The notes beneath the pieces were generated by a model that was given only the letters and a program-made list of their open reading frames with translations, had not been told where the DNA came from and ran no database searches. Positions 3,834-40,108 of a stretch of 64,000 nt of DNA are shown one piece after another. Made by a program: the position numbers and the translations under genes. The first letter of the stretch is position 1; each line of letters starts with the position of its first letter. The DNA lies in assembly GCA_002269645.1 (NCBI GenBank), contig NIVC01000244.1:80484-144483 (forward strand), given 5' to 3'. Source of the stretch: Macrostomum lignano (taxonomy: Eukaryota).

Positions 3834-4022
3834 CTTGCCGGCGACGCCGATCTCCGACTCCATCATGGTCGGGTCCATGACCACGCTGTCAAACTCAATG
3901 GAGCCCTCGAGGCTGGCGGCCCGCTCAGAGTCTGGACAGGAACCGTTCAGCGGCAGGTCGGTGAAGATCAGCCCGATTTGAATCCAGAAATATTTTGGCC
4001 CGTAGGCGCCCAGGCTCTTGAT
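3834..4022 (-). CDS. Gene B coding exon 6
   Basis: [18 protein letters not shown]...LEGSIEFDS; 189 nt. Confidence 0.88.
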
Positions 4023-37600: not shown

Positions 37601-40108
37601 ATGCGTTCTTGAACAATTTTACGCCATTTCTGGCGGTCGGTTGCTAGTCTCTCTGTCATTTCCGGCTCGATCCCTGCTTGGCGTAGTAGTCGCTTCCAGT
37701 ATTCGATGGTGTTACCTTTTCTCTTACGTGTTTTCCTTATCTTTTCCAGACCCTTGTACCATCCGAGAACCATCTTTTTCGTTAGGCGGTTCGCCTCCAT
37801 GCGAAGCACATGTCCGATGCGGATCAGGTGGCTCTTCTCAATCTTTGTTTGTATTGTCGTTACTTCTAGTTCATTGCGAATGTCCTGCATATTTATGATC
37901 ATCATCATCATCATCATCATCATCATCATCGTCATCATCATCATCATCATCATCATCATCATCATCATCATCATCGTCATCATCATCATCATCATCATCA
38001 TCATCATCATCATCATCATCATCATCATCATCATCATCATCATCATCATCATCATCATCATCATCATCATCATCATCATCATCGCCCTGCTTGGCGTAGT
38101 AGTCGCTTCCAATATTCGATGGTGTTACCTTTTCTCTTACGTGTTTTCCTTATCTTTTCCAGACCCTTGTACCATCCGAGAACCATCTTTTTCGTTAGGC
38201 GGTTCGCCTCCATGCGAAGCACATGTCCGATGCGGATCAGGTGGCGTTACTTCTAGTTCATTGCGAATGTCCTGCATATTTATCATCATCATCATCATCA
38301 TCATCATCATCGTCATCATCATCATCATCATCATCATCATCATCATCATCATCATCATCATCATCATCATCATCATCATCATCATCATCATAATCATCAT
38401 CATCATCATCATCATCATCATCATCATCATCATCATCAACATCAACATCATCAAAATGGCTACTGGTGCACGCATTTTTTGACAGCGACCCTCCAGCTCT
38501 TCGATCCAAGACCGTCCTGCTCAGCTGCACCATCCTCCATCCTCTCTCTGCTCCGCTCCTTCAGATTTCCTGTCCAATTACCTTGTGGCGGCCTCTGCCC
38601 TTTCGTCCCTCAACATCACCTTCAATTACAGTCTTCAGCACTCCATCACCTCTAAAATATGGCATAAAAAGCGGAATTTGCTTCTTTTAATCAGATCTAC
38701 GAAGCCTTCCACATACTTTCTGCAGAATCTTTATCGGAATCAGTCTTTTTCTCCTTCATGGAAGTGACCCGCATCCTTTATGTAGGTCATTATCGCGAAA
38801 GCCTCAGTCGTTTTTTATCTTTCTTCTCCATTGTTCAGCTCTCACACGCATAGAGTAGAGTTACCACGACTACCGATCTCATCAGAAGCATTTTATTTTT
38901 CATGTGGATGTTTTTTGCTCTCCGTAATAGCTCGTAATACTAATAATTGATTACACCTGCCCTAATGGGCAGATGTGCAACCGACAGCTCAGCCGCAGCT
39001 ATTGCGCGGCGCATCTGAAGGCTGCGTACGGCTGTTCAGTCCAAGGACTGGGGGGTCGCCACACACCCTGAATTACCCCAGCTAATGCTGGCACCCATTT
39101 TACAGCGGGGTGAACTGAAGCAATGCAGAGTTAAGTGTCTTGCTTAAGGACACAAACTGTTCCGCGTGGATCGAGAATCGAACCATCGACCTTCAAGTCG
39201 TGTGTCCGACGCTTTAACCACTAGGCTAAACCCCCAGATCTCTCTCCAGCTTGCTCTCCAGATGCTGTCCAATTTTGCCAGCGCACTTGCAGCTCTCCCA
39301 ATCCATATCCGAATCTCCATGTCTGACTTTCCATTGTCTTCTATTCTCGATCCAAGGTAGGTAAAGCTCCTCCTCACTTGTTCCAGGTGTACACGATCAA
39401 CGATCACATTCACCAACTGATTCTCCGTGGCTCTCCTCTTGCCATTCACCAAAACTACTTTTCTCAATGCCGTGCAAAGCGCATGAAAGATTGAAAGGCA
39501 ATACCTTGTGTTAATGGTTGTACTCCGGACGCTAACTCACCTGAGGTAGCTGATAGTACCTGGCCACGGCAGCCACCCACTCGGATTGGGATGAGTAAGT
39601 GGCTCCGAAGATGAGCACCTTGTCCTTGGCCGGGTAGTAGCTTCTCACTAAGGCGTGCACCGCGCTGCCCCTGTCATCCTGCGAATTGTGTTGCGGTACA
39701 CGAAACTGAATTTATATTTTCTGGGACTGTTTGATGCATGCGAATTTTTGTATATATAACGACATGAATATATGCACGTAAACGACATGTGTGCTAAAAC
39801 CCTACATAGAAGATAGTGTAATAAACATTAAGCCAATTTAGTTGTCCAAATATATTGTCATAAAAAATTCCAACCCTACTCACCCCGTTGGTGTACTGGT
39901 AATCCATCTGAAACCGGATCTGAGGAAACAGGTCGGTTCTGTTGTGCACATAGTTCACCGAGTACTCAAGGAAGGAGATGTCGTTTCGAAAGTTGGTATC
40001 GTTAGAGACAATGCACACGGCTTTGATCACAGCGATCGGCTCAACTGAGCGACAGGCTGACAGCACGGCCAGAGCCAAGACCAACTGTCTGGCCCCTCTA
40101 CCAAACAT
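13510..40108 (-). CDS. Gene A: complete GABA-B-receptor-like class C GPCR (signal peptide, Venus flytrap domain, 7TM, 39-aa last exon), 14 coding exons, 743 aa
   Basis: Exons 40108-39884, 39678-39541, 35678-35508, 35396-35295, 35197-35123, 34417-34238, 31666-31430, 31257-31194, 31110-31033, 16078-15696, 15311-15189, 15050-14954, 14679-14441, 13629-13510 sum to 2232 nt with consistent phases. Motifs: IKMSSPNIN, GGMLAKTWRVHRIF, FLAWETRNV, LNDSKKIGICVYN. Confidence 0.9.
13701..13894. mobile_element. 194-bp MITE with GGGCCGTATGCAGAAAG termini (PIF/Harbinger-like ends)
   Basis: 17-bp perfect TIR and internal CTAG/GGAC subrepeats; no clean TSD. Confidence 0.7.
14441..14679 (-). CDS. Gene A exon 13 (TM5-TM7)
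   Basis: ILLVIGIFLAWETRNV...LNDSKKIGICVYN...ILLIFGHK; 239 nt. Confidence 0.95.
14690..14925. repeat. Degenerate ~40-bp minisatellite in gene A intron 12
   Basis: Repeats of ACAGACAGGAATACCGGTTAACAGACAGCATCAC. Confidence 0.8.
14954..15050 (-). CDS. Gene A exon 12 (ECL2 and TM5)
   Basis: IYVCHSEYWFTWLGVLFGMKG; 97 nt. Confidence 0.92.
15189..15311 (-). CDS. Gene A exon 11 (TM4)
   Basis: AIKDRHLAGVVAVLLVSDAIFFLIWGLVDSP; 123 nt. Confidence 0.92.
15696..16078 (-). CDS. Gene A exon 10 (TM1-TM3)
   Basis: NYRPKD...IKMSSPNINYIIGCGC...AKTWRVHRIF; 383 nt. Confidence 0.95.
16181..22247 (-). mobile_element. Two tandem non-autonomous Helitron-like units, family 1 (16181-19571 and 19574-22247)
   Basis: 5' ends TCTA(C/A)..TATAAAAATC followed by (TG)n and ...GTCTTAGGCTACC; 3' ends have a CCGGGGA/TCCCCGG hairpin and CTTG; long CT-rich cores; no Rep/helicase ORF. 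Confidence 0.7.
26760..27200. repeat. 30-bp minisatellite (CTTCGAAATCCTCTCCGTGAAACTGGACTC-like) inside family-2 units; also 24230-24740 and 29750-29930
   Basis: Tandem units with copy number differing among the three units. Confidence 0.85.
27220..27265 (+). repeat. Interstitial (TTAGGG)7 tract; equivalent tracts at 24766-24787 and 29960-29989
   Basis: Directly read; same relative position in each family-2 unit. Confidence 0.95.
30896..30972. repeat. (GATA)n microsatellite
   Basis: Direct reading. Confidence 0.95.
31033..31110 (-). CDS. Gene A exon 9
   Basis: MQRDKVGIYDVWSKTVNWTKSMWFEG; 78 nt, phase 1 at both ends. Confidence 0.85.
31194..31257 (-). CDS. Gene A exon 8
   Basis: GRVNFDPSGDRRSNVLIYQLR; 64 nt. 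Confidence 0.88.
31430..31666 (-). CDS. Gene A exon 7
   Basis: TSTQMYKDF...DTVIAAAFA...TDFMGHT; 237 nt. Confidence 0.85.
31868..34079 (+). mobile_element. 2212-bp solo-LTR-like element (Gypsy-type termini) in gene A intron 6
   Basis: TGATGTAACC...GGTTACATCA perfect 10-bp terminal IR; 4-bp TSD TAAC at 31864-31867 and 34080-34083; CCAAT at 32750, TATAAAA at 32804-32810; no coding domain. Confidence 0.75.
34238..34417 (-). CDS. Gene A exon 6
   Basis: IYNLGAYGEKYFWIHIG...CTPKQMATAMEGSL; 180 nt. Confidence 0.9.
35123..35197 (-). CDS. Gene A exon 5
   Basis: KNNVRIFLSVRSVVAEPLTNSLPCT; 75 nt. Confidence 0.82.
35295..35396 (-). CDS. Gene A exon 4
   Basis: VGQDIESKI...KSDATESLAAML; 102 nt. Confidence 0.82.
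35508..35678 (-). CDS. Gene A exon 3
   Basis: [22 protein letters not shown]...FYNWLNVGLL; 171 nt. Confidence 0.92.
36010..36182. repeat. (GACT)n microsatellite
   Basis: Direct reading. Confidence 0.97.
36783..37050. repeat. (ATC)n/(TTC)n microsatellite forming the 3' tail of the adjacent LINE; further (ATC)n blocks at 37899-38083 and 38282-38452
   Basis: Direct reading. Confidence 0.95.
37051..37898 (-). mobile_element. 5'-truncated RTE-like non-LTR retrotransposon: ORF2 C-terminus with multiple zinc-finger motifs
   Basis: RIGHVLRMEANRLTKKMVLGW...TDRQKWR, then CEYEDCGKECKSKAGLTIHQKRMH, CVKCEK...HVKVC, CATC...HRKTC, CEGC...HLRTC; stop at 37099; short 3' UTR and (GAA)n(GAT)n tail. Confidence 0.85.
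38955..39236 (-). mobile_element. tRNA-derived SINE family 1, copy 2
   Basis: Homologous to 6222-6478 and 52215-52461. Confidence 0.85.
39237..39467 (-). mobile_element. RTE-like LINE reverse transcriptase fragment
   Basis: VHLEQVRRSFTYLGSRIEDNGKSDMEIRIWIGRAASALAKLDSIW matches the post-RT thumb region of RTE-type elements. Confidence 0.8.
39541..39678 (-). CDS. Gene A exon 2
   Basis: DDRGSAVHAL...LIFGATYSSQSEWVAAVARYYQLPQ; 138 nt. Confidence 0.88.
39884..40108 (-). CDS. Gene A exon 1 (signal peptide)
   Basis: MFGRGARQLVLALAVLSAC...DLFPQIRF; 225 nt; GTGAGT donor. Confidence 0.8.

Follow-up and report, generated by a model that had tools for sequence, protein, structure and literature searches.

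A tandem pair of GABA-B-like class C receptor genes in Macrostomum that probably do not sense GABA

Introduction

What do two neighbouring genes of the GABA-B family respond to, if almost every residue that holds γ-aminobutyric acid (GABA) has been replaced in their products? [quoted passage not shown] Members of the GABA-B-like group whose pockets are non-canonical have been described in cnidarians and placozoans, in Drosophila (R3) and in many marine invertebrates. A sequence-only reading of the window had proposed that A and B are an old tandem pair, that they are orthologs of neither GABA-B1 (GB1) nor GABA-B2 (GB2), and that they probably do not sense GABA. We have followed up these proposals with gene models, homology searches, trees and pocket alignments. 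The outcome is that A and B are probably separate, intact, tandem paralogs of a Macrostomum-restricted GABA-B-like subfamily. The aligned sequences give good, if not conclusive, support to the view that neither product binds GABA in the manner of GB1.

Results

Two paralogs on one strand

Coding pieces were located by six-frame segments, a hidden Markov model (HMM) built from six distant homologs and tblastn, and exon borders were refined with AG/GT sites and reading phase. The pieces form two separate, collinear coding series on the minus strand, gene A running from 40.1 to 14.4 kb and gene B from 7.8 to 3.8 kb (Table 1). Gene A comprises 14 GT-AG exons (40108-13510) with a product of 743 amino acids, and gene B has six exons in the window (7823-3834). 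The borders given by the sequence-only reading correspond to the ATG of gene A (40108) and to the end of gene B exon 6 (3834), the latter judged by homology.

The paralogy that this reading saw is borne out. Exons 2 to 5 measure 138, 171, 102 and 75 nucleotides in the AG/GT models of both genes, and an identical peptide of 11 amino acids opens exon 3 in each. Exon 1 has 225 nucleotides in A and 222 in B, exon 6 has 180 and 189. A degenerate DNA pattern for IGYANT matches the window twice (35678-35662 and 5479-5463, minus strand) versus 0.01 matches expected by chance. Elsewhere the two proteins are, as claimed, poorly conserved, with 37-39% identity over ~290 amino acids. An old duplication is likewise upheld: gene B shares 63% and 54% identity with other M. 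lignano genes but 38% with A, which is the first branch of the clade that they form.

Family membership

The protein encoded by gene A consists of a hydrophobic leader (a signal peptide, judged from the sequence), a bilobed Venus flytrap (VFT) domain, a seven-transmembrane (7TM) domain and a short tail. Pfam assigns residues 48-396 to ANF_receptor (PF01094, 2.3e-35) and residues 442-704 to 7tm_3 (PF00003, 1.4e-49), the latter spanning profile positions 4-251 of 251. From the end of the VFT (WFEG) to the first transmembrane helix (TM1) there are ~20 residues without a cysteine, and no cysteine-rich domain. Gene B encodes a hydrophobic N-terminal leader and, within the window, a partial VFT (ANF_receptor, 5.8e-26).

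Profile searches of the PDB place both genes in the GABA-B-like branch of class C, as had been proposed. The 7TM of A matches GB2 best (2.3e-40), followed by GB1 (4.5e-27), GPR156 (1e-14) and mGluR (6e-13); its VFT matches GB1 (3.2e-29), GB2 (~1e-25) and mGluR (2e-10), and the partial VFT of B matches GB2 (4e-18) and GB1 (1.6e-16). For VFT and 7TM, every one of the top 15-17 matches is GB1 or GB2, 14-27 orders of magnitude ahead of mGluR or CaSR. The 7TM signatures of gene A are of GB2 type, namely AKTWRVHRIF in TM3, a short intracellular loop 2 (ICL2) and FLAWETRNV in TM6, which is identical to human GB2.

Who are the closest relatives? An exhaustive HMMER search with A exon 10 (127 amino acids) against 1.84 billion cluster representatives returned 771 matches, only four of which exceed 50% identity (53-65%); these four are all from M. 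lignano, and the remainder reach at most 45%. Over its full length A is 41% identical to A0A1I8GNL1 (P0009) and 43% to PAA63463.1 (P0008), within a range of 39-43% over the M. lignano paralogs. Its identity to all other proteins, a vertebrate GB2 (P0064) and the Varroa GB1 ortholog (P0003) among them, is 27-30%. Word-indexed homolog searching misses relatives here: the full draft of A retrieved six distant matches and nothing from M. lignano, an alignment of eight sequences retrieved none, and gene B, itself not in the protein collection, retrieved only P0098. Counting the genes on contig NIVC01001840.1 described below, A0A1I8IYD3 (P0007), P0009 and A0A1I8JGM2/A0A1I8GHT2 (P0010/P0157), M. lignano has at least four paralog types, in addition to tandem copies, which agrees with the lineage-restricted expansion suggested earlier.

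Position relative to GB1 and GB2

Neighbour-joining trees (Kimura distance, 100 bootstraps) were built from 63-65 full-length GABA-B-like proteins together with GB1 of human and Drosophila, taken from PDB alignments, with full-length, VFT-only and 7TM-only partitions. A, B, the NIVC01001840.1 gene and P0009 form a flatworm clade with 100% bootstrap in all three partitions. Within it, B pairs with the NIVC01001840.1 gene (99%), P0009 joins them (88%) and A branches first, so the duplication that separated A from B predates the splits between B, the NIVC01001840.1 gene and P0009. Gene A is thus the earlier-branching paralog, without an annotated counterpart. GB1 of human, Drosophila and Varroa forms a clade at 100% without the flatworm proteins, and the bootstrap of the GB2 clade is only 6-58%. 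In none of 100 replicates, in any of the three partitions, does the flatworm clade join the GB1 or the GB2 set, a result in keeping with the claim that its members are orthologs of neither. The nearest outgroup is a protein of the annelid Lamellibrachia named 'GB2' (84-87% full length, 69% for the 7TM, 25% for the VFT). HMM scores for A follow the order other GABA-B-like (574 bits), GB2 (428) and GB1 (330), an order that B and the M. lignano paralogs repeat. In our reading, the flatworm clade is neither GB1 nor a 1:1 ortholog of GB2, and probably falls among the GB2-like or orphan members of the family; with at least four paralog types, its relationship to GB2 could not be 1:1 in any case.

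The ligand pocket

Pocket positions are given in GB1b numbering, for which the 4MQE chain served as anchor (offset 47, which puts S130, S153, H170, Y250, W278 and E349 in their expected places). They were compared in three alignments (HMMER, MAFFT L-INS-i and hhalign profile-profile), and the roles of residues were judged by two published studies (PMC7411975; 10.1101/621060). Among the eight GABA-contact positions (W65, S130, G151, S153, H170, Y250, W278 and E349) only S130 is identical, and S153 has become T. H170 is Y in A and P in B (Y/P/P/A across the clade), and W278 is M in A and L in B (M/L/L/F). W65 is lost in the clade, where the segment is shortened and of T/D type, and G151 is replaced by A or S. 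E349 is replaced by G, with an Asp two residues later (GLD/GFD). A, B and the M. lignano paralogs have D, E or Q for C103 and Y or F for C129, so that the C103-C129 disulfide is lost.

The residues that the sequence-only reading had listed at 130, 153, 170 and 278 are all reproduced. For Y250 it had given S in A and I in B. The loss of Tyr holds in every alignment; S and I are returned by hhalign, and A and F by HMMER and MAFFT, the equivalent residue being ambiguous because of a three-residue insertion. Altogether the GABA-contact set is nearly gone, and the further losses of W65, G151, E349 and the disulfide add to the earlier suggestion that these receptors probably do not sense GABA. Published mutagenesis bears on several of these positions: W65A abolishes agonist activation, and agonists depend critically on Y250 and W278 (PMC7411975). 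Of eight GABA-B homologs in Nematostella, four are predicted non-binders, and homologs without C103-C129 are classed as such (10.1101/621060). It is the loss of W65, G151, H170, Y250, W278, E349 and C103-C129 that speaks against GABA binding in the GB1 manner.

S130, N-T-S at 152-154, R168, C259 and C293 are present in all four clade members. The invariant 11-residue motif is the ligand-contact loop of lobe 1 (LB1) of the VFT. Positions 130 and 152-154 do not vary among the four members, which are otherwise 37-63% identical, and are variable among GB2 orthologs, in which the VFT has no ligand; the lobe 2 (LB2) positions differ between the paralogs of the clade. An invariant LB1 with a varying LB2 is the pattern expected of a binding site that is in use, with selectivity specific to each paralog. 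Amino-acid-sensing VFTs of the mGluR, CaSR and T1R type are marked by a Ser/Thr pair for the α-carboxylate and α-amine and by acidic residues equivalent to D208 and D318 of mGluR1. The S130/T153 pair of the clade presumably corresponds to S165/T188 of mGluR1. If the acidic D208 and D318 of mGluR1 are, as we assume, also equivalent, with D318 at the position of E349, then the clade has N or S for D208 and G for D318, with the Asp two residues later.

Could A and B instead be 'silent' subunits of GB2 type, with ligand-free VFTs that serve as coupling or allosteric partners of another class C subunit, perhaps as fast-evolving co-orthologs of GB2? The 7TM matches and HMM scores given above favour GB2 over GB1, the TM3, ICL2 and TM6 motifs are identical or nearly identical to those of GB2, T153 and the losses of H170 and Y250 are found in GB2 too, the poorly resolved GB2 clade leaves room for nesting, and a 2026 preprint detected no canonical GB2 in its analysed spiralian proteomes. 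We nevertheless hold this explanation to be unlikely. The absence of any replicate that unites the clade with the GB2 set argues against it, as does the absence of C103-C129, which all sampled GB2 orthologs keep, and of the FH/LH pair that GB2 has at 349-350. The tail of A has 39 amino acids and lacks a long coiled-coil region, no GB1-type partner has been identified, and the invariance of the 130/152-154 loop in the clade, as opposed to its variability in GB2 orthologs, points to a site that is used.

A true but highly diverged GABA receptor with a remodelled pocket appears very unlikely. Membership of the GABA-B family, the retention of S130 and R168, the conservative change to T153, the Asp two residues past position 349 and a possible Phe at the Y250 position of B can be cited in its favour, and Nematostella homologs without H170 and E349 are still predicted to bind GABA (10.1101/621060). 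It would, however, have to dispense with W65, G151, Y250 and W278, as well as with the C103-C129 disulfide, reported to be essential; the published Nematostella criteria class such homologs as non-binders (10.1101/621060), and a GPCR survey of the liver fluke F. hepatica found no in silico evidence of GABA-B GPCRs and, with GABA-A-like pharmacology, suggests that GABA signalling in flatworms is probably ionotropic (PMC6114109).

Integrity of the gene models

All 20 exons of A and B are open and free of internal stops, are bounded by AG/GT sites in phases that fit together, and are collinear with the homologs. The two halves of gene A are separated by intron 9, of about 15 kb, and the other introns measure 84-3863 nucleotides. 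The only 7TM region of the window (16078-14441) is assigned to gene A: the phases of exons 9 and 10 match at a point where homologs run through without interruption, and there is no VFT or 7TM exon in between, so that the VFT and 7TM halves are taken as one gene. Decay of one or both genes, or a gene A model that wrongly joins an orphan VFT to an unrelated 7TM fragment across a repeat gap, is highly improbable, because the unusual repeat-filled intron, the transposons inserted nearby, the incompleteness of B in the window, a lone 7TM fragment at a related locus and the absence of the A and B proteins from a collection of 15 billion proteins are outweighed by the open exons, canonical splice sites, matching phases and undivided interval just described, by a ratio of nonsynonymous to synonymous change in B of 0.32, well under 1, and by the 52-63% identity of the most conserved 7TM exons of A to M. 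lignano paralogs.

The terminal exon of gene A was recognised solely through homology to a Macrostomum tail, and gives an inferred tail of 39 amino acids (VYQLIKLGPNKVDD...HRA) in which RSRR is absent and which is too short for the ~30-residue coiled coil that follows TM7 in GB1 and GB2. An earlier version of the model, ending at a stop right after TM7 (706 amino acids), was replaced once homology revealed the terminal exon; the alternative ending would be a read-through of exon 13 to the stop at 14434-14432. An exact look-up of the 743-residue model in the collection of 15 billion proteins found no entry.

Gene B has no further exons in positions 1-3833, even with the 63%-identical M. lignano query, which implies that everything after exon 6 lies past the window's left edge. 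A single gene with two VFTs, made of A and B together, was considered and rejected, since A ends in a stop and B starts anew, 5.7 kb downstream, with an ATG and a signal peptide.

Table 1. Exons of genes A and B and the long intron of gene A; positions refer to the window, and residue numbers follow GB1b
Feature	Length	Position	Strand	Remarks
Gene A exon 1	225 nt	39884..40108	-	ATG at 40108; signal peptide MFGRGARQLVLALAVLSACRS; VFT start; donor GTGAGT
Gene A exon 2	138 nt	39541..39678	-	S130 equivalent in GATYSSQSE
Gene A exon 3	171 nt	35508..35678	-	opens with 11-residue motif (35678-35646), which is the ligand-contact loop of LB1
Gene A exon 4	102 nt	35295..35396	-	
Gene A exon 5	75 nt	35123..35197	-	Y250-equivalent region, insertion of three residues
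Gene A exon 6	180 nt	34238..34417	-	LGAYGEKYFWIHIGM; M at W278 position
Gene A exon 7	237 nt	31430..31666	-	G at E349 position
Gene A exon 8	64 nt	31194..31257	-	
Gene A exon 9	78 nt	31033..31110	-	VFT end; ends in phase 1
Gene A intron 9	~15 kb	16079..31032	-	segmental tandem repeats in 2.4-3.4 kb units and (TC)n-rich low complexity
Gene A exon 10	383 nt	15696..16078	-	starts in phase 1; VFT-7TM linker without cysteine-rich domain, TM1-TM3; GB2-type AKTWRVHRIF
Gene A exon 11	123 nt	15189..15311	-	ICL2-TM4
Gene A exon 12	97 nt	14954..15050	-	extracellular loop 2 (ECL2)-TM5
Gene A exon 13	239 nt	14441..14679	-	TM5-TM7; FLAWETRNV; ends ...FGHK
Gene A exon 14 (terminal, inferred)	120 nt	13510..13629	-	VYQLIKLGPNKVDDHEVEQ...HRA and stop; matches M. 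lignano tail IFMLIKHGPSKVDDMETAMQ
Gene B exon 1	222 nt	7602..7823	-	ATG at 7823; signal peptide of 20 residues
Gene B exon 2	138 nt	6959..7096	-	
Gene B exon 3	171 nt	5309..5479	-	opens with 11-residue motif (5479-5447)
Gene B exon 4	102 nt	4985..5086	-	
Gene B exon 5	75 nt	4820..4894	-	
Gene B exon 6	189 nt (homology-based)	3834..4022	-	weak donor GTTGTT; alternative donor at 3825

A related locus on contig NIVC01001840.1

The genomic locus of PAA63463.1 is contig NIVC01001840.1 (L001). The database protein (462 amino acids) is truncated at its 5' end, and six upstream exons complete a receptor of 732 amino acids with VFT and 7TM (4942-12690 of that contig). Exon lengths of 138, 171, 102, 75 and 189 nucleotides recur in this gene as in gene B, to which it is related and 63% identical (54% for B and P0009), and its 7TM is present. 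A near-identical tandem copy lies upstream (1-1325, ending at ~1325), and 9 kb downstream there is a lone 7TM exon (21675-21953, 86% identical) with no VFT exons detected. Between B and the NIVC01001840.1 gene, the proportions of nonsynonymous (pN) and synonymous (pS) differences are 0.23 and 0.73; the synonymous sites behind the pN/pS ratio quoted above are saturated, and the two genes may for that reason be old paralogs rather than orthologs. No contig encoding P0157 or P0009 was found. The window and this contig share dispersed repeats that are 73-80% identical (window 8379-8609, 34651-34734, 46594-46669 and 11082-11256; NIVC01001840.1 8096-8326 and 17709-17918), and the copies in the window are 72-90% identical among themselves. 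The similarity of the two ranges fits an origin of the window in M. lignano or a close relative.

Repeats and neighbouring features

Intron 9 of gene A (16079-31032) contains duplicated units spaced 2.4-3.4 kb apart whose copies are 70-99% identical, and a (TC)n-like tract of 1.7 kb at 16494-18255. This array could be a recent local expansion or one inflated by the assembly. Its segmental duplications and (TC)n-like tract account for a strong negative GC and AT skew of the plus strand. Intron 2 of gene A holds long (GAT/ATC)n arrays (36729-38560; for instance 36784-37040, 95% matches), which flank an open frame of 341 codons on the minus strand (37102-38124) with matches to C2H2 zinc fingers; this looks like a repeat-associated or transposon open reading frame (ORF) and not a host gene. 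Both genes carry the same dispersed element of ~300 bp in their second intron (A, 39238-38935; B, 6482-6201; minus strand), with roughly 70-90% translated identity (tblastx). As A and B are otherwise only 38% identical, the two copies are probably independent insertions resembling short interspersed elements (SINE) or miniature inverted-repeat transposable elements (MITE), and not inherited from a common ancestor.

Downstream of gene B exon 6, and probably in intron 6 of that gene, a Tc1/mariner-type remnant lies on the minus strand at 2619-3518, with HTH_28/HTH_23 (5e-06) and DDE_3 (6.1e-19) in separate frame segments. Positions 1-1206 of the plus strand carry a retrotransposon pol fragment with an integrase-like region and a match to DUF5641 (9.6e-25); the fragment is split over frames and cut by the window edge. 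On the other side of gene A, a multi-exon homolog of Par-3 (partitioning-defective 3) occupies 46947-60832 of the plus strand, with Par3_HAL_N_term (3.8e-13) in one exon and PDZ domains in several (best 4.1e-13). Its introns are full of minisatellites with periods of 16-134 nucleotides (for example 48282-49222, 54704-55399 and 61555-63267), and a sharply AT-rich block (44001-46000; GC 0.255 versus ~0.44 elsewhere) separates it from gene A. ARAGORN detected no tRNA-like genes in the window.

Discussion

How might such receptors work? On the features of their sequences, we think it likely that A and B are orphan, dimeric, VFT-gated receptors with a coupling domain of GB2 type and a ligand other than GABA, probably one with a carboxylate. 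They would most likely act as dimers in which closure of the VFT drives a G-protein-coupling 7TM, as in other class C receptors, and gene B would share the build of gene A, judging by the related gene of NIVC01001840.1. The cleft appears to keep the elements of LB1 that anchor a carboxylate, namely S130, the NTSP loop and R168, together with the C259-C293 disulfide. The combination of an invariant LB1 loop with varying LB2 positions suggests that the most likely ligand would be a small carboxylate-bearing molecule that differs from paralog to paralog. The chemosensory or amino-acid-sensing role raised by the sequence-only reading would be speculative.

Several points weigh against this interpretation. 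The 7TM of gene B lies outside the window, and its presence is deduced from the related M. lignano gene. The trees are distance-based, with very long branches and a weak GB2 clade, which leaves room for an origin from GB2. Pocket homology comes from sequence alignment, in which the Y250 equivalent of B could be Phe, and retention of the LB1 loop would fit structural constraint alone as well. Three parts of the gene models are reconstructed: the splice from exon 9 to exon 10 over 15 kb, the last exon of A, and the weak donor at the end of exon 6 in B.

A bolder proposal is that A and B, kept adjacent since before the split between B and P0009, each supply one subunit of a heteromeric class C receptor that is specific to flatworms and responds to a small molecule other than GABA. 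We consider it quite unlikely; if true, a division of labour like that of GB1 and GB2 would have evolved independently within one orphan lineage, and in a phylum whose liver flukes, in published surveys, yielded no canonical metabotropic receptor for GABA.

How do the presumptive orphan receptors compare with characterised ones? Like GABBR2 and Drosophila GABA-B-R2, they carry the VFT directly on the 7TM without a cysteine-rich domain, have T153 and lack the GABA-contact set; GB2 is also the best PDB match of the 7TM, with agreement in AKTWRVH (TM3), FLAWETRNV (TM6) and the length of ICL2. They differ from GB2 in an identity of only ~28%, in the lack of C103-C129 and W278, both of which GB2 keeps, in the lack of a long coiled-coil tail in A and in the invariant loop of the clade. 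With GABBR1 and Drosophila GABA-B-R1, the best PDB match for the VFT of A, they have in common the SPALS loop, S130, R168 and C259-C293. Unlike GB1, they have changes at W65, C103, C129, G151, S152, H170, Y250, W278 and E349, and no RSRR or coiled-coil tail is seen; in the 7TM, GB1 has TKIWWVH and FLAYETK instead. A further parallel is with orphans of marine invertebrates that were automatically named 'GABA-B2-like' (among them Lamellibrachia satsuma KAI0230313.1, Diadema, Ptychodera, Capitella and Trichoplax) and with the predicted non-binders of Nematostella, which are likewise neither GB1 nor GB2. Several of these receptors also lack C103-C129 and have F or Y at 129, as A and B do. Their identity to the flatworm clade is only 27-30%, and the link to the annelid sister protein is weak in the VFT (25%).

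What does the pair add to our view of the family? Since non-canonical GABA-B-like receptors are well known elsewhere, the Macrostomum subfamily is a modest addition. The novelty lies in a well-defined subfamily, to date found only in Macrostomum, with a signature of its own: no first VFT disulfide, no W65, an invariant NTSP loop within IG[YF][AS]NTSP[AL]LS, an insertion of three residues ahead of position 250, G[LF]D at positions 349-351, and, after TM7, FG(H/S/G)K in place of FxPK. The practical value lies mainly in better annotation. The M. lignano members in the databases, A0A1I8GNL1, PAA63463.1, A0A1I8IYD3 and A0A1I8JGM2/A0A1I8GHT2, belong to the same subfamily as A and B; their models are truncated, fragmentary or fused to transposon ORFs (in UniProt, A0A1I8GNL1 with 3732 amino acids and A0A1I8IYD3 with 1488 are family members joined to transposon-like ORFs) and are named only by a generic 'family 3 GPCR domain'. 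The A/B family supplies deorphanisation candidates in a flatworm that is a tractable model. Taken at the level of sequence, it would appear that a free-living flatworm lineage has kept and diversified receptors of the GABA-B family while giving up the pocket for GABA.

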